64,000 nt of DNA, taken from NCBI GenBank assembly GCA_965235115.1, contig OZ249439.1:5146001-5210000 (forward strand), given 5' to 3'. Within the stretch, counting starts at the first letter, position 1, and each line of letters opens with the position of its first letter. The position numbers were made by a program, and so were the translations under genes. Below are positions 6,004 through 48,678 of the stretch, piece by piece. The notes below the pieces were generated by a model that was not told the DNA's origin, searched no databases, and worked only from the letters and a program-made list of their open reading frames with translations. The DNA comes from Laetmonice hystrix (lineage: Eukaryota).

Positions 6004-6656
6004 CAGAAACATCTCGGACCGTATTTAACAGAAACATCTCGGACCGTATTTAACAGAAACATCTCGGACCGTATTTAACGGAAACATCTCGGACCGTATT
6101 TAACAGAAACATCTCGGACCGTATTTAACAGAAACATCTCGGACCGTATTTAACGGAAACATCTCGGACCGTATTTAACAGAAACATCTCGGACCGTATT
6201 TAACGGAAACATTTCGGACCGTATTTAACAGAAACATCTCGGACCGTATTTAACGGAAACATTTCGGACCGTATTTAACAGAAACATCTCGGACCGTATT
6301 TAACGGAAACATCTCGGACCGTATTTAACAGAAACATCTCGGACCGTATTTAACAGAAACATCTCGGACCGTATTTAACGGAAACATCTCGGACCGTATT
6401 TAACAGAAACATCTCGGACCGTATTTAACGGAAACATTTCGGACCGTATTTAACAGAAACATCTCGGACCGTATTTAACGGAAACATTTCGGACCGTATT
6501 TAACAGAAACATCTCGGACCGTATTTAACGGAAACATCTCGGACCGTATTTAACGGAAACATCTCGGACCGTATTTAACGGAAACATCTCGGACCGTATT
6601 TAACAGAAACATCTCGGACCGTATTTAACAGAAACATCCCGGACCGTATTTAACGG
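6004..6656. repeat. 25-bp minisatellite (CRGAAACATCTCGGACCGTATTTAA, about 26 copies)
   Basis: Period 25 (6004 and 6029), with A/G variants often alternating. Confidence 0.97.
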
Positions 6657-7411: not shown

Positions 7412-7789
7412 AGGCCGGGCCGGCCCGGGCAGACATAGCCCCGGGTAGTGTGGGAGTACATACCGACCGGCTCACGGACGGACGGTAGCTCCAGGTAAAC
7501 CCGTCAGGTGAGGCCCCCACCCCGACCCGGCCTTGTTTATTGGTCTGACCCCTCCTATGTCCGGTCCTTGTCTGTCAACACTCTCCCAGATACAGAACTT
7601 GATAAACTTTAAGGTATGCTAATGACCTGCTATACAAGGGGCACCTTATCTAGCAGTTTCAGGTCGGGAGGAGATGGGGTAACACCCCCTCCCCTCCACC
7701 TCGGTGGTGTATGACCAGGGTTAAGTCGATTTCTACCTGTGAGAGGATTACTACATGGTCAGTGACAAACACGGTTCTACGACCACCCA

Positions 7790-9728: not shown

Positions 9729-10316
9729 AGATACCTATCGCCGTGTCGACCCTGTGATAGCAACACGTGTTGGACAGTCGCCCAGTTAGCTCACCTATAT
9801 CTCCTGAGTACACGCACAGTCACAGTCGCAAGCCGTTGATTAGAAGCGCAGACTTTTCCTCATTAGTCGGTCTTGCCGTCTGAGACTGCGTGACTTACTG
9901 TCATTATGCCATCAGTTGGTCCCCACCCCACCCCCCAACATTAATGGTTGACATCGTCCCTACAGATATAGCTGCTCACCTATCAACCACATGTTGACAC
10001 GTTCTGCTAACAACTTGGATTTGGTCAGTGTCGCCCATGTCCAAATGACCAGGGTCAAACAGTTCTCTTCTGGTTCAACATCTGGAGCTCTGGCACAGCT
10101 GGCTTAGAGCAAGAATATTGCAAGTGCAAAACTGATGTTTTGAGAATTGGCATTGCTCAAAACAAATTCTGTTTTGTACATGTAGATACAATATAGCTGC
10201 ACAGATGCGTATTCATGAGATCTATTAAAATGTTCTCTTAAACCAATTTGCAGATACAATATTCTTGCTCTCAGCCAGCGATATACAGTGATGCCCGTAA
10301 TAAACACAATAGTGGG

Positions 10317-11835
10317 TCTGTAATATTGTAACATACTGCAGTCCACATCTGTAATATTGTGTAGCATAATGCAGTCCACATCTGTAATATTGTGTAACAT
10401 ACTGCAGTCCACATCTGTAATATTGTGTAACATACTGCAGTCCACATCTGTAATATTGTGTAACATACTGCAGTCCACATCTGTAATATTGTGTAACATA
10501 CTTCAGGCCACATCTGTAATATTGTGTAACACACTTCAGGCCACATCTGTAATGTTGTGTAACATACTTCAGTCTACATCTGTAATATTGTGTAACATAC
10601 TTCAGTCTACATCTGTAATATTGTGTAACATACTGCAGTCCACATCTGTAATATTGTGTAACATACTGCAGTCCACATCTGTAATATTGTGTAACATACT
10701 TCAGTCTACATCTGTAATATTGTGTAACATACTGCAGTCCACATCTGTAATATTGTGTAACATACTGCAGTCCACATCTGTAATATTGTGTAACATACTT
10801 CAGTCCACATCTGTAATATTGTGTAACATACTTCAGTCCACATCTGTAATATTGCGTAACATACTTCAGTCCACATCTGTAATATTGTGTAACATACTTC
10901 AGTCCACATCTGTAATATTGCGTAACATACTTCAGTCCACATCTGTAATATTGTGTAACATACTGCAGTCCACATCTGTAATATTGTGTAACATACTGCA
11001 GTCCACATCTGTAATATTGTGTAACATACTTCAGTCCACATCTGTAATATTGTGTAACATACTGCAGTCCACATCTGTAATATTGTGTAACATACTTCAG
11101 TCCACATCTGTAATATTGTGTAACATACTGCAGTCCACATCTGTAATATTGTGTAACATACTTCAGTCTACATCTGTAATATTGTGTAACATACTTTAGT
11201 CCACATCTGTAATATTGTGTAACATACTTCAGTCCACATCTGTAATATTGTGTAACATACTTCAGTCCTCATCTGTAATATTGTGTAACATACTTCAGTC
11301 CTCATCTGTAATATTGTGTAACATACTTCAGTCCTCATCTGTAATATTGTGTAACATACTGCAGTCCATATCTGTAATATTGTGTAACATACTGCAGTCC
11401 ACATTTGTAATATTGTGTAACATACTTCAGTCCACATCTGTAATATTGTGTAACATACTGCAGTCCACATCTGTAATATTGTGTAACATACTGCAGTCCA
11501 TATCTGTAATATTGTGTAACATACTGCAGTCCACATTTGTAATATTGTGTAACATACTTCAGTCCACATCTGTAATATTGTGTAACATACTGCAGTCCAC
11601 ATCTGTAATATTGTGTAACATACTTCAGTCCACATCTGTAATATTGTGTAACATACTTCAGTCCACATCTGTAATATTGTGTAACATACTTCAGTCCACA
11701 TCTGTAATATTGTGTAACATACTGCAGTCCACATCAGTAATATTGTGTAACATACTTCAGTCCACATCTGTAATATTGTGTAACATACTTCAGTCCACAT
11801 CTGTAATATTGTGTAACATACTGCAGTCCACATCT
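10317..11835. repeat. 33-bp minisatellite (CATCTGTAATATTGTGTAACATACTKCAGTCCA, about 46 copies)
   Basis: The 11-codon periodic ORFs (STSVILCNILQ) match the 33-bp unit. Confidence 0.97.
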
Positions 11836-13577
11836 GGTGTCAATCAGCAACTCTTCAAACCTGTGGGCTTGGATTCCCAAACAATCAATAATTCAAATGT
11901 CACTGTTGAACTTTCTCTCATGCTGAACAGTATCCTTGTGACGGCAATTCATCTGTGTGATAGACTACGCTGGGTAGTCGTGAAAATTTGCATCCGAATC
12001 CAGTGCAGAATCCACAAACAATTAGTGAACTCATGTGTTTCCGTCACATCTGCTTGAAGAGAATGCCAGCCAGGAGCGGTACACGTGAAAATGTTCATGC
12101 TCCACTGCAGCACAGTATTGTACAGTACTTTATGATTATTACTTAGTGCTGCTCACTCAGCGAGTTCTAATTTACATTTTTCAGATTATTGGCTGGATAT
12201 TGTCCATACATTACAGTCCGATTTCTCACGTTAATTGTGGGGTAACCTGAAAATAGCGGGAATCACCTGGCTGGGTAGAATAATTCGAGGGGTGGGGGTG
12301 GGGGTAAAACTATTCCCATAGGTTCAACACGGTCACTTCAATCAGTAGCTAAGTTTCCAATTATTATGAAGTATTTTACTCCATGTAATTATCTTTTTTA
12401 AGAAACTACTTTTACACACAGGTAAACGGGTCCACTTGATATTCATCCGCGAGTCTCTCGCCTCCGAGGGTCACATCAGTTCTGACCTAGTTCTCTGACC
12501 TCGCTGACCCCAGGGTGTTGACCCGGATGGGGATATATTAGAAAACTCATCATTTACCCTGTGACGGGTGTCACGTAGCCAGGGGGTATGTTAACGGGGT
12601 AAATACCAGCCTCGAGGAAACTGATGATTGTGGTTGCCAGGTGAGAAAGGGTGTAACGAGGTAAGGTAGACTAGACCTCTACTACCACGCTATCGGCGAG
12701 TTTATCTACCCTGTCAGAGGTTGGTGGCAGTGGTAGATTTCAAACTGTTAAACAATTATAAACTCTACCACGAACCAGGGTAAGTACCACCTCTCAAATC
12801 ATGCCCATTCACTGCCTTGACAGCAGGCCGTTTGACAAGCTCTGGTAGTGATAGCTAGTACACCTTCACTAGAGAGATGACAAGTTGATATCACTGATAT
12901 TGACATAACCATCAATTTTCATATACTAGTCAAGCGTTAACACCCAGCAGGAGTTTTTGAACAACATTTATTTTTCAAACAACTTGTTCTTGAGTCAACA
13001 ATGGTCTGTATTGTCGTTCTACATCCCTTTCTTCAAATTTATCTGTATTCAATGAAACGAGATGCGTAAATCTATATCACTCTCATCAAACTTTCCAGAA
13101 ACTTTGTCGTTCACAATCTACGTTATGACGTAATAAATATTGACAGGCGCCTTTTCTTCCACGACCGTCAGAAATTTACCATCTAAGTGAGACTGTGAGC
13201 AGTGAGTTAACCAGGTTTTATACCAGCTCATCATGAGATCCATTATCTGAAAATCAAGTCCATAAACTTCACAGGAGTCCTCTCAGAGCGTGCGTCAATC
13301 AATGATATAAAATAGTCCCGTGCAATTAATGAAACACATAGAAAAGACCATCACCCCATGTTTTCTCCGGCTACCATTAAAATAACGTCACCATGTTTTA
13401 ACATCATCACTGCTTATGCTAAGTGGGCAAAATAACTATAATTCATTGGGGGGGGGGAGGGGTTTTCTAACTCCCGTCCACGATGTCTTAAAATCATCGG
13501 GGAAAATATTCTCACGTGGTTTTTCTTCCAACTATTTAGACATGGTGTGAAGCGGCATGAGACCTCTTCCATCTGTT

Positions 13578-24062: not shown

Positions 24063-24797
24063 TTAACAAGTTTCTTTATAATCGTTCTCTCCTGGCGTGT
24101 TATCATGAAACAGTTCCGAGGTTAACTGTCTGACTGGCTGCACGCCACACTTGTCAACAACCACGCAACGTTCGGAAACAAGATGAAGATAGGTGAGACC
24201 GTAAGAATACCCGCTGTCGGTCACGGAGAAGGAAATCCAAGACACTCTCCGTACTTCTATAAGAAGGGATTCCTCCTTCTCTTTTAACGAGTAACCACTA
24301 TCGACAAATGGTCGCCAAATGAAACTGGTGAAGGAGCAACTAATCCTAGTAAAGCATGGATTTAACATAATGAGATAGATGTAATAAACACTCCACAAAA
24401 CCTACGGTAGGTCCATGGCCACTTGAAACAATAATGCTAAATCTACCTTCTTAACAACCTTGGGCCTGAATACGTCCTCAAGATAGCACCACCAACAAAA
24501 ACACCTTCTTTGAACAAATTCGTTAACGTTTTGAATTTTCGAGCGGATGAGTTCAATACACCTTCTCGATCTTTTCACTCTTGTTTCGATAACTTCACTC
24601 TCTCTGTATTCACAGTTATTATCTCCGTCACTTTGGCAGCGTTGTACCAGACTACATTTCAAACTCTACATTTGGTACTCTTACCCATCCATAGGTCAGT
24701 GATCTCAACATCTCTGGTGCCGTGCGTGTTCCTCATCGCGGTCTCCATCCAGATTTACTAGTGTACATTATGTCGCCGACAGCCTCACAATAACTAC
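24063..24797 (-). pseudogene. Decayed Gypsy-like gag-protease relic (portion downstream of the insertion)
   Basis: Minus strand reads RPFVDSGYS... Removing a 4-nt duplication (GAC CGAC) gives DFLLRDSGYSYGLTYLHLVSE, which resembles the retropepsin LRD[TS]G motif. A degenerate Gag knuckle lies at the insertion junction. Stops and frameshifts are present. Confidence 0.45.
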
Positions 24798-25073
24798 ATT
24801 TATGCAGTCAAACTCGGAGAACGGGAATGCTTGCTGTAGGTTACATTTTATTCATATACATGTAGTAACCCGTCGATCACCCCATGCAATGGGTGACTCA
24901 ACATCATTATAATATGGTAAATGATAAATCCATATACGTGTAACTGATATATGTAACATAACATAACAATACCATAGTCATAATACCATAACTGATAATA
25001 CATTATATAGAAATACATAGTCCAAAATACACGGATATAGGTATAGTATGCCTTATTAGGTGGAGACAATGCC
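24798..25073 (-). repeat. Repeat B2 of the split-direct-repeat element
   Basis: Identical by eye to 25566-25841. It is separated from A2 by a unique spacer of about 183 bp. Confidence 0.95.
24847..24852 (-). terminator. Candidate polyadenylation signal in repeat B2 (also in B1 at 25615-25620)
   Basis: Minus-strand AATAAA about 50 bp before the element's 3' end. Function is inferred. Confidence 0.35.
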
Positions 25074-25256
25074 CATCCAGGAACCCAAATACACACCCAT
25101 CCAACCAAACTGAGAAAAGAACTCGAGCAGCCATGCTGACCCCGAGCCAAACCCAGCAGGCCTACATAAAAACATAAGTGAACCTAGACAAAGGCGTTGA
25201 GACAGAATATTCCCCCAAGTCGACATGAAACATGGAGGAGTCGGGGCGGAGGTGGG

Positions 25257-25570
25257 CCGTCTGATTGCCACGATGCTTCCAAAGGTAGAGAACTCGACTC
25301 TGTCTGCTCGGTTGTATTTATACCCTCCGAATCGTCTCCCAAGTCGCCTTCGTCACTTCCGACCCAGAGCGCGCGAGAGGTGAGAACCAAGATGGTGGTT
25401 AACGGGAGTACAGCTATTGTTTACATTTCCTTGACAATACATACTGAGCACACGACATGGGTCCTAGATACATATTATGTGAGAGTACCTATACTAATCT
25501 CATACCTACGCAAACTCCTCGTTTCTCCTCCATAAATGATCCCGGCTCTTTGGCGCCGAGCTCGGATTTA
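25257..25570 (-). repeat. Repeat A2 of the split-direct-repeat element
   Basis: Identical by eye to 30069-30382. It directly abuts B1 through the ATTTA core. Confidence 0.95.
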
Positions 25571-25841
25571 TGCAGTCAAACTCGGAGAACGGGAATGCTT
25601 GCTGTAGGTTACATTTTATTCATATACATGTAGTAACCCGTCGATCACCCCATGCAATGGGTGACTCAACATCATTATAATATGGTAAATGATAAATCCA
25701 TATACGTGTAACTGATATATGTAACATAACATAACAATACCATAGTCATAATACCATAACTGATAATACATTATATAGAAATACATAGTCCAAAATACAC
25801 GGATATAGGTATAGTATGCCTTATTAGGTGGAGACAATGCC
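25566..25841 (-). repeat. Repeat B1 of the split-direct-repeat element
   Basis: Identical by eye to 24798-25073 (offset 768). Confidence 0.95.
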
Positions 25842-27356
25842 ACTAAGCGGAATCGAAGATGAAGCTGGAGCCACCAAAGAAGGCAGGAGAAAAAGACTCC
25901 TAACGCGATCCACTGACACCGCACCAGGAGCCAAATCTGAGCATTACCGTCAGACACAACTTGAAAGATGAGGCCCCGATCATCTCCTGGTCCATAACGG
26001 AACAAACTATTTCCACGGAGCCAATCATCATCCCGTCCGATTAGGGACATCTGGTGTACCTGCAACAAGCATATCAAGGCTTTGAATCCTATCGCATAAC
26101 GTCAGGTTAACAAGTTATAACGCCCAGCTACTTGAACCAAACAGGAAGCATACCCCTTAAATGACAGACACCATACTTTACTTATCCTGGGAAAATTTTA
26201 ATAGACCGAGAAAGAACTGGTGAAAAATGTGACGGTATCCCATTCTACCACCTGGGACCATACTATAAATATTTAATAATAAACAATAACCAAACCGGGC
26301 AACAATCCAAACTTCCTCGTCACTGAATCGGGCGACAAATCCAAGCTTCCTCGTCACTGCCCCGGACAACACATCCAAACTTCCTGGGTAACATCTAACA
26401 TCTAAGGGTGGAGGTCAGAACGGAACCTATTCCAATTAAAGCTTACTTCATCCACCTCCTTCAAAGCCTCGTCTATCTATAGCCGCTCCCGAGCGCTTGC
26501 CACCACCTTGTACGGTACCAAACCAGTACCCACCAGTCGGCACAGAGCCCGACACTTAATGAAACACGGACCGTAACGTAAGCATAAGGTAACGTAAAAA
26601 GGGGGAGACTACTGGAATAACAAATACTGGAGGTGAAGGACGCGCAAACGTAGCAGGAACCATGAAAGTCGTGGTCAAAAACCGTGGAATCGCTTCACGC
26701 TTGGGAGTCCAACATAGCCTACATCCAACATCGGATCTCTTGGGGCCGAGAGGTTTCCCAAAACTTTAAAAAGATAACTGATCTCCGTATAGATATACAC
26801 AAAATAACCACAGGATCAAACGAACGAGTTAAAGGCTTTGATATCCGAGACCCAACCCAACCACGTTAAGCCCACGCGGCAAGTATAACCTACAAGAAAC
26901 AGGCATGACATATATGTATAGAAATGGTAGCTAAAGGAACCTCTAAACCAGAACAACCTCTGAACCATACCGAACCTTGAATAATATAAATCAATACTCA
27001 GCCCTTCGAATAACATCACAGGTTCAAAACACGGGGAATTGACCTTACCCACATCAGTAAATCTCCAACGTCCACCAAAAACACATACTCAGCCTTCCAT
27101 CTGCTCATATCAGTACATGTATGTGTAAATATAGCATATACGTCCCACGTCCTATGCACCAAAGCCATATGCTCAGCCTGTCGTTCACCTAAAAATGGAA
27201 AACAAAAGACCGAGGAAACATCTGGCCGAGTGAGTAACAGTTACTGCCCTATGACAAATACAATCAACGCAATGTCATAAATTGCATAAATTCCGCTCAT
27301 ACATTATGACAAATCAATTAATCACTCAATAATACAATATTACATATTACCTTATA

Positions 27357-27960
27357 GTTAACATTTAATTATATAGTTAGACGAAATTACGATAAATATA
27401 TAATATAACCTACATTATAGCCCTCACAGTAAAAACTACAATAGGCAACAATTAGCTAAAGTGACTACCCTAACTGACATTTAACAATTTTATCGAAGAT
27501 ACCTAATATTACCAAATTAGCAAAATGGTACATTGAAAATTGACGTTCAGATAATTTACAAAGTTAACATTTAAATTATATAGTTAGACGAAATTACGAT
27601 AAATATATAATATATCCTACATTATAGCCCTCAACACAGTAAAAACTACAATAGGCAACAATTAGCTAATAAGGTGACAACCCTGACTGACGTTTTTATC
27701 GAAGATACCTAATATTACCAAATTAGCAAAATGGTACATTGAAAATTGACGTTCAGATAATTTACAAAGTTAACATTTAAATTATATAGTTAGACAAAAT
27801 TACTATAAATATATAATATATCCTACATTATAGCCCTTAACACACAGTAAAAACAACAATAGGCAACAGTTAGCTAAGGTGACAACCCTGACTGATGTTA
27901 AAATTTTATCTAGATACCTAATATTACCAAATTAACATGATGGTACATTGAAAATTGACG
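27357..27960. repeat. AT-rich 206-bp tandem repeat x3 inside the element
   Basis: GTTAACATTTAA anchors at 27357, 27563 and 27769. Copies are diverged, with small indels. Confidence 0.9.
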
Positions 27961-28095
27961 GCGAGGTAGATATAAAACGCGTACACAGTAAAATACAGGA
28001 GAAGTGACCTGATTGACTAAAACCCCCTACTGACCTAAAATGACTTCTTAACAACTTTAAAACAAGAAATTAAAGGTTAAGCTCCAATCCCCAAC

Positions 28096-28700
28096 AAAGG
28101 CAGAGCGGAGGAGACACTCCCTCACATCCACATACACGGGTACCCATCGATCACCATAATGGGGACTAGAAGTACAATGCATCAAAGGATGTGGCAGCCT
28201 GCGGAAACCAGGCACATCTGCCGTAAACAACTTTTAATACAACGGAGATGGCGGAACCGAAGGGAACACACCGTCAACCCCAAGGAATCGTATCAAGGGA
28301 GGACGGAACCCCTGGAACAAGAAAATAGAGGATCATCCCTAAACCCTAGCAAAGGCAGAGCGGAGGTAACACCCTCTCCCATCCATATACACGGGTACCC
28401 ATCGATCACCCATAAAGGGGACTAGAAGTACAATGCGCCAAAGGATGGGGCAGCCTGCGGAAACCAGGCACATCTGCCGTAACAACTTGTAATATAACGG
28501 GGATGACGGAACCGAAGGGACCACACACCGTCAACCCCAAGGTAACCCTATCAAAGGAGGACGGAACCCAACGGAACACGGCCCCACCCCCAACCAGGTA
28601 ACAACAACAAGGGAAGGCGGAACCGAAGGGACCACACAGCGTCAACCCCAAAGTAATCATATCAAGGGAGGACGGACCCCACGGAACACGACCCCGACCA
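28096..28700. repeat. 255-bp tandem repeat (2 copies plus a partial of about 110 bp) inside the element
   Basis: AAAGGCAGAGCGGAGG at 28096 and 28351. GCGGAACCGAAGGGACCACACA repeats again near 28615. Confidence 0.85.
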
Positions 28701-30068
28701 GGTAACACAACCACGCCGCTTACCATGCAACTGTAGCTAAAGTAACAACACTGAATAGTGAGAGACACCTGCCTAAATCTAGATATAACAGGAATAAGCT
28801 ACTCGTTGGCTAGAAACAAAAAGAAAATTATCAACGATACTAATATAGGCCTAGTGTCCCTCAACTCGTTACGTTTATCGACCATCTCCAAAGACAAAGT
28901 GTATCAGGTTAAAGGTGATGCCAATACCTCTGGGACATATTAATCTGCCCACCGTAACTAAATACCTCTGCCAAATAACAGCTCACCACCTACCGCTCGA
29001 ATACACGCGCAGCATATCCACATCCCACCAACATTCCAAACGGCAAAAACATTTCCGCCAAGCGATAAACACCGTTTATTTAACAAAATCTATAGGGAAG
29101 CATACCATACACCTGTCGCATGGCAAACTTGGTCTCAACTGTTAGAATTAGAGGCAGCAGTAAACACCCATATAAGACAGGAATAGATAAATTGATGAAC
29201 ACCCGGCGTATCAAGTTACAGCAGTTCACTGGTCAAGTCCACTAATCGTTCCTCTACAACCACCGGAGGACACAAAAATATTTCTACACAACCCCACACA
29301 GTGAGGGCTAGCGAAAAACATCAACTCCATGTACCTCACATTTCCCCGAGCCTACCCCCCACCATGATACACCACGTGGGAGGACAAACCAAAATTCGGA
29401 TGCGCATACGGGTATGCCGCAACCAGCCGCAGCTATCACCCACCAATACCACAAAAAGTGACCCCAACATAATTCAAAGGGGGAGCAGTAGTCACACCTA
29501 GGTCAGGAAACGCACATGAAAAGGAACGACCCGCAAGTATACGCTTCCAAACTACCGTTGTATAAGCCCATTCCTGGAACCACGCTATTATTACCCGACT
29601 CAACACGGAGTACCCACGGTAAATACAAAACTGAAATTATCGTAACCCACTACCATTCTTGGACAAATACGTACACAAAATTACACAACCTAGGACCGCT
29701 GACGTTGTCAGTCGCCTGCAATGCGTGGCAAAGTGAAATAACTTCAACGTCGTAACACAAACTGTTTACCAGGAGCCTCAAGTAGTCTGTCCAAGCCCGA
29801 ACAACAAAGGCCAGGTCGGCCCCGTGGACAGTGACCGCGTGCTCCGCAACACTCAGTCAGAGTATTTCAGACACGCATAAATACTGGGTACCGGACTAAA
29901 ATACAGCCTCGAAAGACGAATAACTGAATCCGTTTTAGACATAACACCTGCACAGGTGTCATAAACACAAGGCAAATATACGAAACAGTCGACAAACCAC
30001 GTTCCACTGTACACTTGAAACGAAGTCCCAACCATAGAACGAACTCACCCGATGTGTGGGGAACAAAA

Positions 30069-30382
30069 CCGTCTGATTGCCACGATGCTTCCAAAGGTAG
30101 AGAACTCGACTCTGTCTGCTCGGTTGTATTTATACCCTCCGAATCGTCTCCCAAGTCGCCTTCGTCACTTCCGACCCAGAGCGCGCGAGAGGTGAGAACC
30201 AAGATGGTGGTTAACGGGAGTACAGCTATTGTTTACATTTCCTTGACAATACATACTGAGCACACGACATGGGTCCTAGATACATATTATGTGAGAGTAC
30301 CTATACTAATCTCATACCTACGCAAACTCCTCGTTTCTCCTCCATAAATGATCCCGGCTCTTTGGCGCCGAGCTCGGATTTA
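30069..30382 (-). repeat. Repeat A1 of the split-direct-repeat element
   Basis: Identical by eye to 25257-25570 (offset 4812). Confidence 0.95.
30127..30134 (-). promoter_or_regulatory. Candidate TATA box in repeat A1
   Basis: Minus-strand TATAAATA about 60 bp before the 3' end of A1, pointing into the internal region. Function is inferred. Confidence 0.4.
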
Positions 30383-30955: not shown

Positions 30956-31004
30956 CAAAGTGGGCTGTCGGACTATTGCTGTTTAACTGGAAGTGAACCA
31001 CAAA

Positions 31005-31140
31005 AGTCGAAGTCAAAGTCGAACTCGAAGTAAAAGTTTAACTCGAAGTCGAAGTTTAACTCGAAGTCGAAGTCGAAGTTAAACTCGAAGTCGAAGTCGA
31101 ACTCGAAGTTTAACTCGAAGTCGACGTCGAACTCGAAGTT
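31005..31140. repeat. Degenerate hexamer microsatellite (GAAGTC/GAACTC/GAAGTT)
   Basis: Read directly. Confidence 0.85.
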
Positions 31141-31749
31141 TTGCACGGTGTCTCAGTAAATATATGGACGTCAAACTCGAAGACGAAGAATTTCCCTTCA
31201 GGTATTCCATACCCGAAGGTGAAAGGTTCTGTGACCACGAATTGGAGTTTGAGACCACCGAGTCACAGCAGCCCCTATAATAGTCCGTTCACGTCATAAT
31301 AACACTGTTTCTACTCTTCCACTTTAATGGGAATACCACACAATAATGTCCCAATACATTATGTATAACTATGAGGGGAGAAAAAGGGAAAAATAGAAAG
31401 AAAAAGGTAACTTCCGTCAGAGATGTTGCGTAGTAAATGACATAGGATGTATTTTACATACTAAACGCCTATCATCCCTCATCCATATTCCAGCAGGCAG
31501 AAACTACCAAATGGCCATTTACACATGCATTATTGAAAATAAAGATTTAAAAAGACCAATAAAAAGCATGGAAAAGACATTGCGCTCTGCCGATCAAAGT
31601 CGCCGAGAGCTGGAGTCGACAATGGTCATTTGCTGATCGTGACCATCTATTTAATAGCAGGTGTTCAGAAGCCTTGTTAACGGACCTAATCTATCAAACG
31701 AAGACACTCAAAGGCAGCAAGTTGTTTTTCACTTTTGTCTCTCCGGTCA

Positions 31750-34700
31750 TGATAAGGAGATGATACAGAGGACACCAGCACCCCGGGACTACGCTCTACT
31801 CTGTCTGGTCATGGGGAGATGATACAGAGGACACCAGCACCCCGGGACTATGCCCTACTCTGTCTGGTCATGAGGAGATGATACAGAGGACACCAGCACC
31901 CCGGGACTATGCCCTACTCTATCTGGTCATGAGGAGATGATACAGAGGACACCAGCACCCCGGGACTATGCCCTACTCTGTCTGGTCATGATGAGGTGAT
32001 GATACAGCGGACACCAGCACCCCGGGACTATGCCCTACTCTGTCTGGTCATGATGAGGTGATGATACAGCGGACACCAGCACCCCGGGACTATGCCCTAC
32101 TCTGTCTGGTCATGAGGAGATGATACAGAGGACACCAGCACCCCGGGACTATGCCCTACTCTGTCCGGTCATGGGGAGATGATAGAGGACACCAGCACCC
32201 CGGGACTATGCCCTACTCTGTCTGGTCATGAGGAGATGATACAGAGGACACCAGCACCCCGGGACTATGCCCTACTCTATCTGGTCATGAGGAGATGATA
32301 CAGAGGACACCAGCACCCCGGGACTATGCCCTACTCTGTCCGGTCATGACGAGGAGATGATACAGAGGACACCAGCACCCCGGGACTATGCCCTACTCTG
32401 TCCGGTCATGGGGAGATGATACAGAGGACACCAGCACCCCGGGACTATGCCCTACTCTATCTGGTCATGAGGAGATGATACAGAGGACACCAGCACCCCG
32501 GGACTATGCCCTACTCTGTCCGGTCATGACGAGGAGATGATACAGAGGACACCAGCACCCCGGGACTATGCCCTACTCTGTCTGGTCATGAGGAGATGAT
32601 ACAGAGGACACCAGCACCCCGGGACTATGCCCTACTCTGTCCGGTCATGAGGTGATGATACAGAGGACACCAGCACCCCGGGACTATGCTCTACTCTGTC
32701 TAGTCATGATGAGATGATACAGAGGACACCAGCACCCCGGGACTATGCCCTACTCTGTCCGGTCATGGGGAGATGATACAGAGGACACCAGCACCCCGGG
32801 ACTATGCCCTACTCTGTCTGGTCATGATGAGGTGATGATACAGAGGACACCAGCACCCCGGGACTATGCTCTACTCTGTCTGGTCATGATGAGATGATAC
32901 AGAGGACACCAGCACCCCGGGACTATGCCCTACTCTGTCCGGTCATGAGGTAATGATACAGAGGACACCAGCACCCCGGGACTATGCCCTACTTTGTCTG
33001 GTCATGATGAGATGATACAGAGGACACCAGCACCCCGGGACTATGCCCTACTCTGTCCGGTCATGGGGAGATGATACAGAGGACACCAGCACCCCGGGAC
33101 TATGCCCTACTCTGTCCGGTCATGAGGTAATGATACAGAGGACACCAGCACCCCGGGACTATGCCCTACTTTGTCTGATCATGATGAGATGATACAGAGG
33201 ACACCAGCACCCCGGGACTATGCCCTACTTTGTCTGGTCATGATCAGATGATACAGCGGACACCAGCCCCCCGGGACTATGCTCTACTCTGTCTGGTCAT
33301 GATGAGATGATACAGAGGACACCAGCACCCCGGGACTATGCCCTACTCTGTCCGGTCATGGGGAGATGATACAGAGGACACCAGCACCCCGGGACTATGC
33401 CCTACTCTGTCTGGTCATGATGAGGTGATACAGAGGAACCAGCACCCCGGGACTATGCCCTACTCTGTCCGGTCATCAGGAGGAGATGATACAGAGGACA
33501 CCAGCACCCCGGGACTATGCCCTACTCTGTCTGATCATGATGAGATGATACAGAGGACACCAGCACCCCGGGACTATGCCCTACTCTGTCTGGTCATGAT
33601 GAGATGATACAGAGGACACCAGCCCCCCGGGACTATGCCCTACTCTGTCCGGTCATGATGAGATGATACAGAGGACACCAGCACCCCGGGACTATGCCCT
33701 ACTCTGTCCGGTCATGGGGAGATGATACAGAGGACACCAGCACCCCGGGACTATGCCCTACTCTGTCCGGTCATGATGAGGAGATGATACAGGGGACACC
33801 AGCACCCCGGGACTATGCCCTACTCTGTCTGGTCATGATCAGATGATACAGAGGACACCAGCACCCCGGGACTATGCCCTACTCTGTCTGGTCATGAGGT
33901 GATGATACAGAGGACACCAGCACCCCGGGACTATGCCCTACTCTGTCCGGTCATGATGAGGAGATGATACAGAGGACACCAGCACCCCGGGACTATGCCC
34001 TACTCTGTCTGGTCATGACGAGGAGATGATACAGAGGACACCAGCACCCCGGGACTGTGCCCTATTCTGTCCGGTCATGACGAGGAGATGATACAGAGGA
34101 CACCAGCACCCCGGGACTATGCCCTACTCTGTCTGGTCATGAGGAGATGATACAGAGGACACCAGCACCCCGGGACTATGCCCTACTCTGTCCGGTCATG
34201 AGGAGATGACACAAAGGACACCAGCACCCCGGGACTATGCCCTACTCTGTCTGGTCATGATGAGGTGATGATACAGAGGACACCAGCACCCCGGGACTAT
34301 GCCCTACTCTGTCCGGTCATGGGGAGATGATACAGAGGACACCAGCACCCCGGGACTATGCCCTACTCTGTCAGGTCATGGGGAGATGATACAGAGGACA
34401 CCAGCACCCCGGGACTATGCTCTACTCTGTCAGGTCATGGGGAGATGATACAGAGGACACCAGCACCCCGGGACTATGCCCTACTCTGTCTGGTCATGAT
34501 GAGATGATACAGAGGACACCAGCACCCCGGGACTATGCCCTACTCTGTCTGGTCATGAGGAGATGATACAGAGGACACCAGCACCCCGGGACTATGCCCT
34601 ACTCTGTCAGGTCATGGGGAGATGATACAGAGGACACCAGCACCCCGGGACTATGCTCTACTCTGTCAGGTCATGGGGAGATGATACAGAGGACACCAGC

Positions 34701-35260
34701 ACCCCGGGACTATGCCCTACTCTGTCCGGTCATGAGGTGATGATACAGAGGACACCAGCACCCCGGGACTATGCCCTACTCTATCTGGTCATGAGGAGAT
34801 GATACAGAGGACACCAGCACCCCGGGACTATGCCCTACTCTGTCAGGTCATGGGGAGATGATACAGAGGACACCAGCACCCCGGGACTATGCCCTACTCT
34901 GTCTGGTCATGATGAGGAGATGATACAGAGGACACCAGCACCCCGGGACTATGCTCTACTCTGTCTGGTCATGATCAGATGATACAGAGGACACCAGCAC
35001 CCCGGGACTATGCCCTACTCTGTCCGGTCATGATGAGGAGATGATACAGAGGACACCAGCACCCCGGGACTATGCCCTACTCTGTCTGGTCATGGGGAGA
35101 TGATACAGAGGACACCAGCACCCCGGGACTATGCCCTACTCTGTCCGGTCATGATGAGGAGATGATACAGAGGACACCAGCACCCCGGGACCATGCTCTA
35201 CTCTGTCCAGTCATGAGGTGCTGATACAGCGGACACCAGCACCCCGGGACTATGCCCTAC
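31750..35260. repeat. 59-65 bp minisatellite (about 58 copies), the largest array in the window
   Basis: Constant core GATGATACAGAGGACACCAGCACCCCGGGACTATGCCCTACTCTGTCYGGTCAT with a variable GA-rich linker. Period 59 at 32221 and 32280. Confidence 0.97.
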
Positions 35261-37944: not shown

Positions 37945-40062
37945 GCTTCGAAAATACTCTATGTCCTCTTTGGTGTACCAGTTGTTATTGTCTAGTCGGA
38001 AATACTCTATGTCCTCCTTGGTGTACCAGTTATTATTGTCTATTCGGAAATACTCTATGTCCTCCTTGGTGTACCAGTTGTTATTGTCTAGTCGGAAATA
38101 CTCTATGTCCTCCTTGGTGTACCAGTTGTTATTGTCTAGTCGGAAATACTCTATGTCCTCCTTGGTGTACCAGTTATTATTGTCTAGTCGGAAATACTCT
38201 ATGTCCTCCTTGGTGTACCAGTTATTATTGTCTATTCGGAAATACTCTATGTCCTCCTTGGTGTACCAGTTGTTATTGTCTATTCGGAAATACTCTATGT
38301 CCTCCTTGGTGTACCAGTTGTTATTGTCTATTCGGAAATACTCTATGTCCTCCTTGGTGTACCAGTTGTTATTGTCTAGTCGGAAATACTCTATGTCCTC
38401 CTTGGTGTACCAGTTGTTATTGTCTAGTCGGAAATACTCTATGTCCTTCTTGGTGTACCAGTTGTTATTGTCTAGTCAGAAATACTCTATGTCCTTCTTG
38501 GTGTACCAGTTGTTATTGTCTAGTCGGAAATACTCCGTCCTCCTTGGTGTACCAGTTGTTATTGTCTAGTCGGAAATACTCTATGTCCTCCTTGGTGTAC
38601 CAGTTGTTATTGTCTAGTCGGAAATACTCTATGTCCTTCTTGGTGTACCAGTTGTTATTGTCTATTCGGAAATACTCTATGTCCTCCTTGGTGTACCAGT
38701 TGTTATTGTCTAGTCGGAAATACTCCATGTCCTCCTTGGTGTACCAGTTGTTATTGTCCAGTCGGAAATACTCTATGTCCTCCTTGGTGTACCAGTTGTT
38801 ATTGTCTATTCGGAAATACTCTATGTCCTCCTTGGTGTACCAGTTGTTATTGTCTATTCGGAAATACTCTATGTCCTTCTTGGTGTACCAGTTGTTATTG
38901 TCTAGTCGGAAATACTCTATGTCCTTCTTGGTGTACCAGTTGTTATTGTCTAGTCGGAAATACTCTATGTCCTCCTTGGTGTACCAGTTGTTATTGTCTA
39001 GTCAGAAATACTCTATGTCCTTCTTGGTGTACCAGTTGTTATTGTCTAGTCGGAAATACTCTATGTCCTTCTTGGTGTACCAGTTGTTATTGTCTACTCG
39101 GAAATACTCTATGTCCTCCTTGGTGTACCAGTTGTTATTGTCTAGTCGGAAATACTCTATGTCCTTCTTGGTGTACCAGTTGTCATTGTCTAGTCGGAAA
39201 TACTCTATGTCCTTCTTGGTGTACCAGTTGTTATTGTCTAGTCGGAAATACTCTATGTCCTCCTTGGTGTACCAGTTGTTATTGTCTAGTCGGAAATACT
39301 CTATGTCCTTCTTGGTGTACCAGTTGTCATTGTCTAGTCGGAAATACTCTATGTCCTTCTTGGTGTACCAGTTGTTATTGTCTAGTCGGAAATACTCTAT
39401 GTCCTTCTTGGTGTACCAGTTGTTATTGTCTAGTCGAAAATACTCTATGTCCTCCTTGGTGTACCAGTTGTTATTGTCTAGTCGGAAATACTCTATGTCC
39501 TTCTTGGTGTACCAGTTGTCATTGTCTAGTCGGAAATACTCTATGTCCTTCTTGGTGTACCAGTTGTTATTGTCTAGTCGGAAATACTCTATGTCCTTCT
39601 TGGTGTACCAGTTGTTATTGTCTAGTCGGAAATACTCTATGTCCTTCTTGGTGTACCAGTTGTTATTGTCTAGTCGGAAATACTCTATGTCCTTCTTGGT
39701 GTACCAGTTGTTATTGTCTAGTCGGAAATACTCTATGTCCTCCTTGGTGTACCAGTTGTTATTGTCTAGTCGGAAATACTCTATGTCCTCCTTGGTGTAC
39801 CAGTTGTTATTGTCTAGTCGGAAATACTCTATGTCCTTCATGGTGTACCAGTTGTTATTGTCTAGTCGGAAATACTCTATGTCCTTCTTGGTGTACCAGT
39901 TGTTATTGTCTAGTCGGAAATACTCTATGTCCTCCTTGGTGTACCAGTTGTTATTGTCTAGTCGGAAATACTCTATGTCCTCATTGGTGTACCAGTTGTT
40001 ATTGTCTAGTCGGAAATACTCTATGTCCTCCTTGGTGTACTAGTTGTTATTGTCTAGTCGGA
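37945..40062. repeat. 48-bp minisatellite (GTCGGAAATACTCTATGTCCTYCTTGGTGTACCAGTTGTTATTGTCTA, about 44 copies)
   Basis: 16-codon periodic ORFs appear on both strands. Copies are very homogeneous. Confidence 0.97.
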
Positions 40063-43450: not shown

Positions 43451-45224
43451 AACGTCGATAAATAAAATATAAAAAGTTCGCTTTGATCAGGATAAAAATA
43501 TGCCCTCAATGTGAGAATCCAGCCTGGGGCAATGGACACTACAACTCGGGGCCTCCGCATGTGATTTCAGTACCGCAGGCAATGAACATGTTTTGAATTC
43601 TTCCACTCTGTCCAAGTACAGTCTCCACAGCCGTTGTGCCACCAGTGTACAACAGCCGAATATAGAAACGCCAGTGACACTGTCTCATTGCGACCGCTCC
43701 ACACCAAGAACACCACTGACCCCCACCATGGTGTCAAAACGGCATCTCTCTTGGGACAGCCGCCGTGCCGGCAAATAAGCCGAGGTAGCCAATTCTTTAG
43801 GTGACCGGCATTGAAATGTGCCTTAAGTTTACACAGACGACTACAGTACAGGCAGGATCTATTGAAGGACACAATCCTGCGACCCGTGACTCAACCTGAC
43901 CAGTTTACTTTCAGGGCGCGTAGGAAATAGCGGAGAACACAAGGTATAGATCTAACATCTGTACACGTGGAAAACATCATAGAATATAGCCAGGTGCACA
44001 AATAATGAAATAAACCCATGGATTGACAGCCCTAATCCTCCATACCTGTGGGTATGAGACATTCGCTGGCATTCCGTTCGTACTTAGTGTGTCGTCAATG
44101 GGCCTCACAGCAACAAGTGTGCAACGTAAGGCAATTCATTATGGAACAATGTTGTTTATGTATCTTGCGCCCGTAAGCGAAGCCAAACCTTATGGTTTAC
44201 ACATTTCCCAATGACCTTTCAAAGATTAGCATCCTGTCTATCCTGGATTCTCTTGTCCCAAAACATGATAATATTTGATATCGTGGACATATAACGTGTG
44301 CCCCCCCCCCCATTATGTCGTGCCCTACAGGTCTGGCTCTAGCAACATTAGGATGCCACTTGCCATGTCACAAGGCCAGCAGAGCTCTCATAATGAGTGT
44401 CCCCGACCCTTGGGGAGCTGCCGTTCTGCCAGACATGTCAATTCCCTATGGCGCAATTACCTCGAGATACGCGCCCTGCGCTGTAACGAAGGACTCCCAA
44501 CACAAAAACTTGCATGTAGTCATGCACCCGTCAAATCCAGTCCACTCGTCGAGGCTCTGTTTCCAAGTCACACCAGTCAGATCATGGCGATTCTCGATGG
44601 CTTGGGTCTTTGATCACTATCCCCAAATGATGAAAACTAAAAGAACACATACAGGTTGTCCCCGCAATATAAGCCATACCTTCTATTGTTAATCTCTTGC
44701 GGCCTCTAAAAAATGTAATAACTGTTGTCATGATTTAGAAACAATACTGTAGATCGATCAAAATGTACCTGGCCAAAGGAAAACGGATAATTATTTACCC
44801 GTTACAGTAAAAAATAAAAATAAGTTCTCCACGTTGTAAATAATTATTGCAACAATGGTCATTTGGATTGTTTATTTTTTCAATATTGTCCTATTTCCGA
44901 CACAATCTGAGTACGTATTATGTTAATGATCTGGTAACCACATGCTGAGGTAACCATTGGGAGGATATATTTTTATACCAGGGTGATGTTTTTTCCCTAC
45001 ATTTGTCTAGATGATTACCAACACCGTCAAATGTAGATTACACGATGGGCTTGCCGTGGGTCCCTGTATGTGTATTTATAGAGAAGATATCCCACGGTGG
45101 CTTCCATAGTCATTGTTCTCTTGGTTTTCTAAATCCCGAGATAAGATTCCCTCAATGACGTGAATGAGTAGATCAGCCATTCCCCGCTTTGTCATCCATC
45201 AACCTTCAGTAGGCTACAGCCAGT

Positions 45225-48085
45225 CTGTACCCGAGTACAGACCTATACCCACATCGCCTACCTTACACGGTCAGTCTCTACCCGAGTACAGACCTACACC
45301 CACATCGCCTACCTTACATGGTCAGTCTGTACCCGAGTACAGACCTACACCCACATCACCTACCTTACACGGTCAGTCTGTACCCGAGTACAGACCTACA
45401 CCCACATCACCTACCTTACACGGTCAGTCTGTACCCGAGTACAGACCTACACCCACATCGCCTACCTCCCACGGTCAGTCTGTACCCGAGTACAGACCTC
45501 AACCTTCCACGGTCAGTCTATACCCGAGTACAGACCTCAACCTTACACGGTCAGTCTATACCCGAGTACAGACCTCAACCGTACACGGTCAGTCTATACC
45601 CGAGTACAGACCTCAACCTTCCACGGTCAGTCTATACCCGAGTACAGACCTACACCAACATCGCCTACCTTACACGGTCAGTCTGTACCCGAGTACAGAC
45701 CTACACCCACATCGCCTACCTCCCACGGTCAGTCTGTACCCGAGTACAGACCTACACCCACATCGCCTACCTTACACGGTCAGTCTGTACCCGAGTACAG
45801 ACCTACACCCACATCGCCTACCTTACACGGTCAGTCTGTACCCGAGTACAGACCTACACCCACATCGCCTACCTTACACGGTCAGTCTATACCCGAGTAC
45901 AGACCTACACCAACATCGCCTACCTTACACGGTCAGTCTATACCCGAGTACAGACCTACACCAACATCGCCTACCTTACACGGTCAGTCTATACCCGAGT
46001 ACAGACCTACACCCACATCGCCTACCTTACACGGTCAGTCTGTACCCGAGTACAGACCTACACCAACATCGCCTACCTTCCACGGTCAGTCTGTACCCGA
46101 GTACAGACCTACACCCACATCGCCTACCTTACACGGTCAGTCTGTACCCGAGTACAGACCTACACCCACATCGCCTACCTCCCACGGTCAGTCTATACCC
46201 GAGTACAGACCTACACCCACATCGCCTACCTTACACGGTCAGTCTGTACCCGAGTACAGACCTACACCCACATCGCCTACCTTACACGGTCAGTCTGTAC
46301 CCGAGTACAGACCTACACCCACATCGCCTACCTCCCACGGTCAGTCTATACCCGAGTACTGTAGACCTACACCCACATCGCCTACCTTACACGGTCAGTC
46401 TATACCCGAGTACAGACCTACACCCACATCGCCTACCTTACACGGTCAGTCTGTACCCGAGTACAGACCTACACCCACATCGCCTACCTTACACGGTCAG
46501 TCTCTACCCAAGTACAGACCTCCACCAACATCGCCTACCTTCCACGGTCAGTCTGTACCCGAGTACAGACCTACACCCACATCGCCTACCTCCCACGGCC
46601 AGTCTGTACCCGAGTACAGACCTACACCCACGTCGCCTACCTCCCACGGTCAGTCTGTACCCGAGTACAGACCCCAACCTTCCACGGTCAGTCTATACCC
46701 GAGTACAGACCTCAACCTTCCACGGTCAGTCTATACCCGAGTACAGACCTCAACCTCCCACGGTCAGTCTATACCCGAGTACAGACCTACACCCACATCG
46801 CCTACCTTACACGGTCAGTCTGTACCCGAGTACAGACCTCAACCGTACACGGTCAGTCTATACCCGAGTACAGACCTCAACCTTCCACGGTCAGTCTATA
46901 CCCGAGTACAGACCTCAACCTTCCATGGTCAGTCTATACCCGAGTACAGACCTCAACCGTACACGGTCAGTCTATACCCGAGTACAGACCTCAACCTTCC
47001 ACGGTCAGTCTATACCCGAGTACAAACCTCAACCGTCCACGGTCAGTCTGTACCCGAGTACAGACCTCAACCTTACACGGTCAGTCTATACCCGAGTACA
47101 GACCCAACACCCACATCGCCTACCTTACACGGTCAGTCTGTACCCGAGTACAGACCTCAACCTTCCACGGTCAGTCTATAATACCCGAGTACAGACCTCA
47201 ACCTTCCACGGCCAGTCTATACCCGAGTACAGACCTCAACCTTCCACGGTCAGTCTATACTCGAGTACAGACCTACACCCACATCGCCTACCTTACACGG
47301 TCAGTCTATACCCGAGTACAGACCTACACCCACATCGCCTACCTTCCACGGTCAGTCTATACCCGAGTACAGACCTACACCCACATCGCCTACCTTACAC
47401 GGTCAGTCTATACCCGAGTACAGACCTCAACCTTCCACGGTCAGTCTATACCCGAGACAGACCTCAACCTTCCACGGTCAGTCTATACCCGAGTACAGAC
47501 CTCAACCTTCCACGGTCAGTCTATACCCGAGTACAGACCTCAACCTTCCACGGTCAGTCTATACCCGGGCAAAGACCTCAACCTTCCACGGTCAGTCTAT
47601 ACCCGAGTACAGACCTCAACCTTCCACGGTCAGTCTATACCCGAGTACAGACCTCAACCTCCCACGGTCAGTCTATACCCGAGTACAGACCTCAACCTTC
47701 CACGGTCAGTCTATACCCGAGTACAGACCTCAACCTTGCACGGTCAGTCTATACCCGAGTACAGACCTCAACCTTCCACGGTCAGTCTATACCCGAGTAC
47801 AGACCACAACCTTCCACGGTCAGTCTATACCCGAGTACAGACCTCAACCTTCCACGGTCAGTCTATACCCGAGTACAGACCTCAACCGTACACGGTCAGT
47901 CTATACCCGAGTACAGACCTCAACCGTACACGGTCAGTCTATACCCGAGTACAGACCTCAACCTTCCACGGTCAGTCTATACCCGAGTACAGACCTCAAC
48001 CTTCCACGGTCAGTCTATACCCGAGTACAGACCACAACCTTCCACGGTCAGTCTATACCCGAGTACAGACCTCAACCTTCAGTCT
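45225..48085. repeat. Two-unit composite minisatellite: 51-bp and 38-bp units sharing a 30-bp core CACGGTCAGTCTRTACCCGAGTACAGACCT
   Basis: The 51-bp unit ends ACACCCACATCGCCTACCTTA and the 38-bp unit ends CAACCTTC. The array produces the 996-aa ORF. Confidence 0.96.
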
Positions 48086-48678
48086 ATACACTCTCCCAAC
48101 CACCAGAAGGAAAACACCCTCCCAACCATGCACAGGACAACAACAACCGTGTAGACATTTGTGAATCCCGGTCAGTCCTTCCTCAGCTATCGAATAAAGC
48201 GAGCCTAATGTCTTGTCCGTTATCCGAGAGGCGTTCGGTCAGCCTCATGTCCTTGTGTCCACCTATAAGTCTTGCTTGCCGTGGCTGGGCGGCCTCTCCT
48301 GTAGACCGCTATTACCTCTCGGTCGGGGGGTATAAAGATACGGCCCGCCGGACAAATTGATTACGGCCTATATCGGGGAAAGGGCCACAAGCACCAATGG
48401 TCAGAGCTAATCGAAAGTCTTTAATGCCACCTGGGTGAAAAAAAGGTTGCTTGGATTTGGAGAGTCCTGCAGAGAGGGGGTCAATCAGTGGACCAGCGAA
48501 TGGCCCCGACCACTGGCGGACAGAGAATGGCTCTAAGACCGCCGGGCAGTGAATGGACACCGCCCGACCGACCGACCACTGATCGCATATAGGTAAGCGA
48601 CCAGACGAGTGCCTCTTTGCCCCATCTCCAATCACTCCTACAGAGGAACGTGGCATTAGAACCAGAATGGTATCGCAT

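Follow-up and report, generated by a model that had tools for sequence, protein, structure and literature searches.

A recently inserted, non-coding element with split direct repeats in Laetmonice hystrix has the architecture of tyrosine-recombinase retrotransposons

The element lies on the minus strand of the window, the 64,000-nucleotide stretch of Laetmonice hystrix contig OZ249439.1 analysed here, and contains two different repeats, A and B, each present twice. Repeat search and direct reading gave the minus-strand order TAAAT, A1, internal region, B1, A2, spacer and B2, which matches exactly the arrangement proposed in an earlier note on this DNA. The A repeat is 309 nt long, and A1 (30377–30069), the 5' split repeat, is identical to A2 (25565–25257), its complete internal copy. 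The B repeat is 276 nt long, and B1 (25841–25566), the complete internal copy of the 3' split repeat, is identical to the terminal B2 (25073–24798), so that the identity first judged by eye holds for both pairs. B1 ends in GACTGCATAAAT and is joined straight to A2 with zero bases between them, and a 183-nt spacer (25074–25256) separates A2 from B2. A1 opens with the palindrome CCGAGCTCGG (30368–30377). The end coordinate of 30382 given earlier takes in a TAAAT (30382–30378) that adjoins the start of A1 and repeats the last 5 nt of B. This TAAAT is present once in the empty allele described below and is a crossover microhomology with the core AAA.

Both A and B carry putative transcription signals. 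The TATAAATA box lies at 30127–30134 in A1, with about 58 nt of A remaining downstream, and again at 25315–25322 in A2. Direct reading places AATAAA at 25615–25620 in B1 and at 24847–24852 in B2. The loop of a GGTTAC/GTAACC hairpin (about 24836–24878) contains the B2 copy of AATAAA, and a further 49 nt of B follow it. These signals, previously noted in A and B on the same strand, are thus present in each repeat copy. In the alignment the TATAAATA box is kept in all related families, and both TATA and AATAAA, each on the minus strand, are conserved in three families that have unrelated internal regions. Judged from the position of the box, transcription would start about 25–30 nt downstream of TATAAATA, still within A.

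The internal region (25842–30068; 4227 nt) is non-coding and is T- and G-rich on the sense strand. It contains a tandem repeat of period 206 (2.9 copies; 27356–27960) and tandem repeats of period 255 (1.9 copies) and period 55 (3.2 copies) at 28095–28676; the window as a whole is very rich in tandem arrays. Two conserved blocks lie near the ends of the region. The first, CGG/GTGAGTTCGTTC (30037–30051), lies 18–32 nt into the region, and its core GGTGAGTTCGTTC is invariant in 4/4 aligned family members. The second, TGGTGGCTCCAG/CT (25863–25876), lies 22 nt upstream of B1 with CTGCCTTCTTT just before it. The first block matches the 5' splice-site consensus and the second resembles a 3' splice site, and the two may function as such; the likeness of the second block to a tRNA primer-binding site appears weaker. 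We considered TGGTGGCTCCAGC as a primer-binding site and rejected this as the main reading on account of its position before B1, an extra G at the critical TGG in family T1, and a complementarity that would stop short of the tRNA T-stem. The genome search yielded no spliced, intron-less copies, which would be the classical proof of an RNA intermediate.

Among the reading frames that overlap the element the longest has 153 aa, in keeping with the earlier estimate of about 150 aa, and the internal region has 61–84 stop codons per frame in all six frames. No frame of at least 60 aa on either strand of the element matched Pfam, so by this measure it encodes no RT, RNase H or tyrosine recombinase, as the earlier reading by eye had suggested. 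A tblastn search of the element with local DIRS1-like RNase H, methyltransferase and recombinase ORFs found nothing, and neither did Rfam and tRNA scans. Since the element encodes no protein, its enzymes must be borrowed from another element.

The same architecture recurs elsewhere in the genome. A genome search found at least 14 full-length copies that are 97–100% identical and whose parts follow one another as in the element. An exact search with the 32-nt B1–A2 junction gave 55 occurrences, and the reversed control gave 0; because of this recurrence at at least 14 other loci and this contrast with the control, the arrangement is far beyond chance. Genome-wide the B1–A2 junction is present in 58 copies, and the 5.6-kb unit, with differing flanks, is present on at least 12 contigs. 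The element thus belongs to an ORF-less, multi-copy family with identical termini, and copies lacking these termini, which the earlier note had named as grounds for refutation, did not turn up. Their lengths range from 3.8 to 5.6 kb, a spread for which changed copy number in the internal tandem arrays largely accounts; in a second subfamily an 83-nt tandem array is expanded. Ten over-long copies measure 5.9–14.8 kb. One of these copies (C30:10420068-10431958) contains a Gypsy-type RNase H, nested within it on the opposite strand, and another (L047) has no ORF inside the element. Laying out the matching segments of one further copy revealed insertions of foreign DNA. Active Gypsy-type elements abound in this genome.

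The genome also contains shorter units, about 75 of them solo A–spacer–B units (768 nt) and about 10 A–internal–B units. The excess of the former is not what simple rules of length and distance in homologous recombination would predict.

The insertion in the window is polymorphic, as contigs from three runs of the same sample join both flanks and skip exactly 5580 nt. The empty-site joint runs from 24797 to 30378, and a single TAAAT (5 letters) fits both sides. Together with the identical repeats and with other copies that are 99–100% identical, this empty-site allele upholds the claim of recent insertion. The element is a genuine copy of a mobile element that is present many times in the genome, and it was inserted very recently.

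Two related families, T2 (L048) and T1 (L049), have only short blocks in common with the element. We examined both as possible coding relatives and found them equally non-coding; a 349-aa frame in L049 proved to be low-complexity tandem repeat. The resulting superfamily comprises at least three families. At least 106 of its copies bear the junction, it also includes several hundred solo units, and only about 150 nt of cis-acting blocks are common to its members.

The genome search recovered other full-length copies, for which the earlier note proposed to look, but found no autonomous partner sharing A and B. All 24 exact boundaries between an A end and non-spacer sequence lead into the same non-coding internal region, and the 67 boundaries between non-spacer sequence and B, like the 67 internal starts, each show one and the same internal sequence. 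We compared the superfamily with about 200 recombinase loci (97 PF00589 matches, plus 103 scored of 419 candidates from a search with a 401-aa DIRS1-like recombinase). None of the approximately 200 lies within 10 kb of the 106 superfamily junctions, the nearest being 14.7 kb away on the opposite strand, and the ten over-long copies contain no recombinase match. Loci L031, L035–L040 and L042 are DIRS1-like, with inverted terminal repeats, an internal complementary region and the gene order RNase H–Dam-like–recombinase. This family was rejected as the partner, as it has none of the element's conserved blocks. No autonomous relative with the same termini was found in a terminal comparison that covered one DIRS1-like recombinase family.

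The flank upstream of the insertion ends in AAAT at 19/20 sites and in GAAT at 1/20, and at 17 sites the host base that follows the terminal CATAAA varies (T, A or G). In these 20 upstream and 17 downstream flanks and in the empty allele, AAA(T) microhomology is present and target-site duplication is absent; AAA(T) is a microhomology core, not a duplication. Formally, the AAA found at either end would also allow a reading as a 3-bp duplication of a preferred target.

The repeats of each pair vary in concert. Relative to the window copy, A1 and A2 have 34 shared variants and 7 private ones, and B1 and B2 have 54 shared and 12 private, with 7 of the 12 being the target-derived last base. Such sharing is expected if each cycle regenerates both repeats. 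A sister family contains the tandem arrangement ...internal–B/A–internal–B/A..., as expected from integration at a resident junction.

We consider it likely that the element is a non-autonomous, non-coding split-direct-repeat tyrosine-recombinase retroelement of Ngaro/PAT/VIPER architecture, a class that is read from the repeat architecture and within which Ngaro and PAT cannot be told apart without proteins. Split direct repeats are the defining feature of PAT, Ngaro and VIPER (PMC4157794). Weighing against this reading are the absence of any RT, RNase H or recombinase remnant from the element, the failure to find an autonomous relative or spliced copies, the excess of solo A–spacer–B units and the formal alternative of a 3-bp duplication. 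The architecture, the insertion-site microhomology and the concerted variants point to an RNA intermediate and to dependence on a recombinase, and movement through RNA is supported indirectly by the concerted A1/A2 and B1/B2 variants and the conserved promoter and poly(A) signals.

A cycle of the following kind would fit. RNA polymerase II would initiate close to the 3' end of A1, downstream of its TATA box. The transcript would continue through the internal region, B1, A2 and the spacer as far as the AATAAA site, and would end about 30 nt short of the end of B2. Such an RNA would be missing the greater part of A1 and the tip of B2, yet would carry complete copies of B1 and A2, joined as they would be at the junction of a circle. 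A reverse transcriptase supplied in trans could then copy the RNA, using the internal B1–A2 junction as a template from which the ends are restored and joined. A tyrosine recombinase, also supplied in trans, would recombine the ...GCATAAA/TCCGAG... junction with a genomic AAA(T), and integration there would leave no target-site duplication. Recombination between repeats, in the genome or in the intermediate, may give rise to the solo A–spacer–B and the A–internal–B units.

Two other kinds of mobile element were weighed against this retroelement reading. It is unlikely that the element is an aberrant LTR derivative (LARD/TRIM-like, with A–spacer–B as the LTR), a Helitron-like element with tandem ends or a member of an undescribed class. 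The approximately 75 solo A–spacer–B units do resemble solo LTRs, and active Gypsy-type elements are abundant in the genome; however, TG..CA ends, a variable duplication of 4–6 bp and a polypurine tract are all absent. The ends are instead (T)CCGAG...CATAAA(T) and the flanks are N-AAA-N, which are not duplicates; the only string resembling a primer-binding site, before B1, is disrupted in family T1, and the 5' 'LTR' would be split by 4.2 kb in 58/58 copies. Helitrons insert between A and T, begin with TC, finish in CTRR and have a hairpin some 10 nt inside the 3' end. The element likewise has TC at its start, after a host A, and a hairpin near its 3' end. However, about 45 nt separate that hairpin from the end, the end itself is CATAAA rather than CTRR, and the following host base is T, A or G.

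We regard as rather improbable a Crypton-type non-autonomous DNA element, in which a tyrosine recombinase would excise a DNA circle via the terminal AAA(T) cores and reinsert it without passing through RNA; the empty allele would then be the excision product. The precise empty site fits clean excision and a pre-insertion allele equally, AAA microhomology without duplication is compatible with such a route, and single A–internal–B and A–spacer–B units are also found inserted. Yet a DNA circle does not need split repeats, nor would it account for a TATA box and a polyadenylation signal kept across families with fixed polarity and spacing; concerted A1/A2 and B1/B2 variation is not given by DNA copying of the whole unit, and at least 58 near-identical copies need replicative spread. 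Local or segmental duplication or an assembly artefact, to which the very frequent tandem arrays of the window might lend some colour and which the earlier note named as an outcome that would undo its reading, is refuted by the presence of the 5.6-kb unit, in different surroundings, on at least 12 contigs, by the 58 junctions and by the exact empty-site allele.

A further and tentative possibility is that the superfamily has no surviving coding member in this genome and persists as a hyper-parasite of unrelated DIRS-type retrotransposons. It would then be the tyrosine-recombinase counterpart of SINEs and LARDs, and its satellite-filled 'cargo' of 3–5 kb, bounded by conserved splice-site-like signals, could be an intron.

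Tyrosine-recombinase retrotransposons are the least understood order of retroelements, and the model of their replication (split repeats, a circular intermediate and integration by the recombinase) rests almost wholly on sequence inference. The present family is young, abundant and polymorphic and consists of cis-acting parts only, which makes it useful for testing that model. Its sister families narrow down the conserved blocks and so offer a natural minimal substrate for recognition by the reverse transcriptase and recombinase, and the integration site, with its AAA core and integration beside resident ends, can be read directly from the family. It suggests that tyrosine-recombinase elements can spawn LARD- or SINE-like parasites in animals, which repeat annotation pipelines based on protein homology would wholly miss.

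Among known systems, Ngaro (order DIRS; zebrafish, sea urchin, fungi and Cafeteria) is, like the element, not known to leave target-site duplications on integration; it encodes Gag, RT/RNase H and a tyrosine recombinase, whereas the present element encodes nothing. The Ngaro order A1–[ORFs]–B1A2B2, with the internal repeats at the 3' side, parallels the A1–internal–B1A2B2 order here, and both leave solo AB units scattered across the genome (PMC8547959). PAT-like elements (Pat1, Kangaroo and Toc, in the DIRS group) likewise have A1–B1–A2–B2 split direct repeats and occur in molluscs, cnidarians, echinoderms and nematodes (PMC4157794). In contrast to the element, PAT encodes RT/RNase H, a methyltransferase-like domain and a recombinase, and in some cases its internal repeats lie between genes. 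LARDs and TRIMs resemble the element in long or short non-coding cargo between repeats, mobilisation in trans and the solo repeats left behind, but they depend on a DDE integrase and have TG..CA ends, 4–6 bp duplications, a PBS and a PPT, none of which the element has. TOC1 is about 5.7 kb long and has a split arrangement of terminal repeats. Like the element, it is multi-kilobase and non-autonomous, and transposition of this DIRS-order retrotransposon has been observed in Chlamydomonas reinhardtii (PMC9940879). TOC1 has a coding relative, TOC3, and a green alga as host, whereas for the present element, in an animal, no coding relative was found. The earlier remark that such families are rarely described is fair, although TOC1 (PMC9940879) and SIRE/VIPER (PMC6681497) are precedents. 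SIRE/VIPER is also the precedent for the 183-nt private spacer between A2 and B2, which sets the element apart from Ngaro and is its sole departure from the class order. SIRE of Trypanosoma cruzi consists of the A2..B2 part of VIPER plus a short private middle segment and is far commoner than full VIPER (PMC6681497). Although VIPER is coding and lives in a kinetoplastid, whereas here even the long form is non-coding and the host is an animal, the 768-nt A–spacer–B units relate to the full element exactly as SIRE relates to VIPER.

On the minus strand, the element consists of the five letters TAAAT (30382–30378), repeat A1 (30377–30069, 309 nt), an internal region (30068–25842, 4227 nt), B1 (25841–25566, 276 nt), A2 (25565–25257), which abuts B1 directly, a 183-nt spacer (25256–25074) and B2 (25073–24798). 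The two A copies are identical at every position, as are the two B copies, and the repeat arrangement is exactly that described in the earlier note. B ends in GACTGCATAAAT, and the TAAAT before A1 therefore repeats the end of B. The motif TATAAATA lies in A about 58 nt upstream of its end, and the last base of the AATAAA in B is 49 nt from the end of B in the window copy.

The earlier note had also read the element as ORF-less, with no clear reverse-transcriptase or recombinase motif, and our searches bear this out. The longest frame overlapping it has 153 aa, the internal region carries 61–84 stop codons in each of the six frames, and none of 18 frames of at least 60 aa matched Pfam at E values up to 1. 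A tblastn search with ORFs from local DIRS1-like elements (RNase H, methyltransferase-like, recombinase) found no match in it, and Rfam and tRNA scans of the element were empty. Having no genes, the element therefore requires mobilisation in trans. Long minisatellite arrays fill the window, with periods of 20–270 nt and up to 59 copies (for example 711–1496, 2456–3425, 6004–6654, 8001–9729, 10317–11836, 31755–35260, 37948–40062, 45221–48080 and 62592–64000). All long open frames of the window (such as 7711–9839, 45164–48154 and 38544–40043) fall inside these arrays without a convincing Pfam match and probably represent translated repeats. An AAGTCG/AACTCG minisatellite with 6/12/18-nt periodicity (30986–31151) lies 600 nt from the insertion.

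A DNA search of the 627-Mb animal genome (35 contigs), in which the window is placed at C4:5146001–5210000, found at least 14 further full-length copies on many contigs at 97–100% identity, all with the same order of parts and with different flanks. The 32-nt B1/A2 junction occurs 58 times in the genome, 55 times exactly, and its reversed control not once. Scoring the repeat variants of 14 other copies against the window copy as reference, we found 34 A variants that a copy carried in A1 and A2 alike and 7 that it carried in one only; in B, 54 were common to B1 and B2 and 12 were private, 7 of these being the target-derived last base. DNA copying of the entire unit would not carry a change between repeats, whereas rebuilding A1 from A2 and B2 from B1, the known rationale of split direct repeats, would do so. 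The shared variants, read from sequence, support a retroelement-type cycle that would rebuild the repeats at each copy. Gene conversion between the repeats could also be a source of such variants.

Contigs from three runs of the assembly's own sample join 24797 to 30378, omitting exactly 5580 nt, and five letters (TAAAT) fit both sides of the join. Each of these contigs is a single 1.7-kb piece spanning both flanks, and therefore an element-free allele with one TAAAT coexists with the filled allele; it may represent the ancestral site or have arisen by precise excision. The empty allele, the identical repeats and a copy elsewhere in the genome with 99.7–100% identity together show that the window element moved very recently, as had been proposed from the repeats. 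Local duplication or misassembly is excluded by the recurrent 5.6-kb order, the different flanks, the 58 junctions and the empty allele, and the element belongs to a mobile family.

The genome has about 130 instances of the A end joined to the spacer, against the 58 B1/A2 junctions, so that about 75 solo A-spacer-B units of 768 nt each must be present; about 10 further copies have the form A-internal-B and lack A2-spacer-B2. Pairing 67 internal starts with 67 internal ends gave 60 copies, in which the internal region is mostly 3.8–5.6 kb long (median 4.8 kb). Much of this spread appears to be owed to copy-number shifts in internal tandem repeats, and ten longer copies probably hold nested insertions. 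An 11.9-kb family copy (C30:10420068–10431958) has, on its other strand, a match to Gypsy-type RNase H (C30:10424295–10424594), which is a nested LTR-element insertion; candidate places for RT_RNaseH_2 number more than 1100 in the genome, many in intact frames of 1100–1700 aa. A second subfamily, equally without reading frames, shares about 87% identity with the window subfamily over the internal region, 94% over A and about 91% over B. At one locus (L047:7930–9999; G000:C1:100829–102898), a copy of this second subfamily adjoins an ORF of LINE type that has endonuclease and reverse-transcriptase domains.

The family has non-coding relatives. The B-end motif GATCGACGGGTTAC...AATAAAATGTAACCTAC has 265 further occurrences in variants unlike the window subfamily, and a degenerate junction pattern found 106 junctions, 58 from the window family, about 24 from a sister family, T1, and about 22 from another, T2. 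Blocks of this superfamily are ...GACTNCATAAAT/MCGRRCTCG..., TATAAATAC, GGTGAGTTCGTTC, GGTGGCTCCAGCT, GTCTCCACCTAATAAGGCA and GATCGACGGGTTAC..AATAAAATGTAACCTAC. We read one member per sister family, a 5.2-kb unit of T1 (L049) and an A-internal-B form of T2 of about 3.6 kb (L048), and their internal regions are unrelated, repeat-filled and without Pfam match. A 349-aa frame in the T1 member was rejected as a gene, being a translated tandem repeat. Conservation in alignments of the families is confined to short blocks: about 60 nt at the beginning of A, TATAAATAC, GGTGAGTTCGTTC a short way into the internal region, CTGCCTTCTTTGGTGGCTCCAG/CT..GCTTAGTG immediately upstream of B, GTCTCCACCTAATAAGGCA where B begins, a GGTTAC/GTAACC hairpin with AATAAA in its loop, and the terminal GAGTTTGACTNCATAAAT. 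These blocks are likely cis-acting sites. The hairpin, at 24836–24878 and 25604–25646 on the minus strand, has AATAAA in its loop in each of the four family members aligned, and this signal ends 49–50 nt before the end of B; the arrangement could modulate use of the poly(A) site, as needed for read-through of B1. The predicted minus-strand transcript would begin some 25–30 nt past 30127 and end some 15–25 nt past 24847. Two blocks match the consensus of a 5' and a 3' splice site, and the internal region may therefore be spliced out as an intron, with predicted joining of 30049/30048 to 25865/25864; intron-less copies do not exist in the genome.

In the window family and related ones, the sequence bordering A on its outer side ends in AAAT at 19 of 20 insertion sites and in GAAT at the other, and the base after the terminal CATAAA is T, A or G at the 17 sites with the downstream flank read. 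The left pentamer takes its first base from the target and the right pentamer its last, and these two bases differ; the pentamers are therefore not duplications, and target and B/A junction have an AAA core in common (T-AAA-T). Site-specific recombination between the junction and a short matching target produces such a core, and a DDE integrase does not. In T1, long units are arranged head to tail (...internal-B/A-internal-B/A-spacer-B) with the same 5.2-kb spacing at two loci (L049, G000:C1:23653180–23658700; G000:C3:4963737–4969723), as expected from integration into a resident junction. One window-family copy (G000:C2:40893553–40900762) starts at the B end of a T1-like family, forming the hybrid junction GACTTCATAAAT/CCGAGCTCGGCG (C2:40893615), and one target resembles the B end over 7 nt. 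The tandem units, the hybrid junction and the B-end-like target fit a recombinase that would favour sequences resembling its own junction.

At least 97 Pfam-detectable tyrosine recombinases are present in the genome, and a search with the local DIRS1-like recombinase found about 100 more places from many families, at 33–60% identity and often intact. Intact examples of recombinase families are at C1:56916903 (1451-aa frame), C1:26006688 (1384 aa), C5:12875604 (336 aa), C18:8040735 (340 aa), C29:4937276 (406 aa), C11:9907002 (433 aa), C2:32633498 (426 aa), C4:39776463 (356 aa) and C1:69840738 (347 aa). The genome is unusually rich in such genes: an initial scan gave 419 candidate places, and at least 15 families at 33–60% identity are present, many intact and some within frames of 1100–1450 aa. 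Seven recombinase-like fragments (129-aa frames) at G000:C5:36673264–36711727 are spaced at 6238 or 6672 nt, a regularity that points to a tandemly repeated unit with a recombinase remnant. Among the matches listed, no recombinase lies inside the ten long copies or at 10 kb or less from one of the 106 junctions, and the search for an autonomous partner for A and B gave no junction-linked recombinase among the roughly 200 places listed. The DIRS1-like family, the only recombinase family with its ends read, has inverted terminal repeats, an internal complementary region and the gene order RNase H-like, Dam-like methyltransferase, 401-aa tyrosine recombinase; it shares none of the superfamily blocks and was rejected as a helper sharing the termini. 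This family, with loci L036 (G000:C30:3044214–3047705), L040, L042, L031 and L038, is young, with at least 10 copies that have an intact recombinase frame at 98–100% identity, and its elements end in ...ATTGTAATAT.

From its sequence, the element is best classified as a non-autonomous member of the DIRS order with split direct repeats, a placement that does not decide between Ngaro and PAT. The order, the copy number and the lack of coding capacity support the non-autonomous reading originally offered, and we consider it probable that the element moves as a split-repeat retroelement mobilised in trans. What is new is the animal host for such an element, the scale, with at least three wholly non-coding families that have only cis blocks in common, and the absence of any linked coding relative; the interest for transposon biology is moderate to high. 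Ngaro elements are built as A1-[internal]-B1A2B2 and also occur as scattered solo AB repeats (PMC8547959), PAT and VIPER are likewise defined by split direct repeats (PMC4157794), and TOC1 of Chlamydomonas is a recognised non-autonomous element of DIRS order (PMC9940879). SIRE of T. cruzi corresponds to the A2..B2 portion of VIPER, with a short middle segment of its own (PMC6681497), and the A-spacer-B units of the window family mirror the relation of SIRE to VIPER. The window element works like all of these elements but falls outside the coding definition of the autonomous families.
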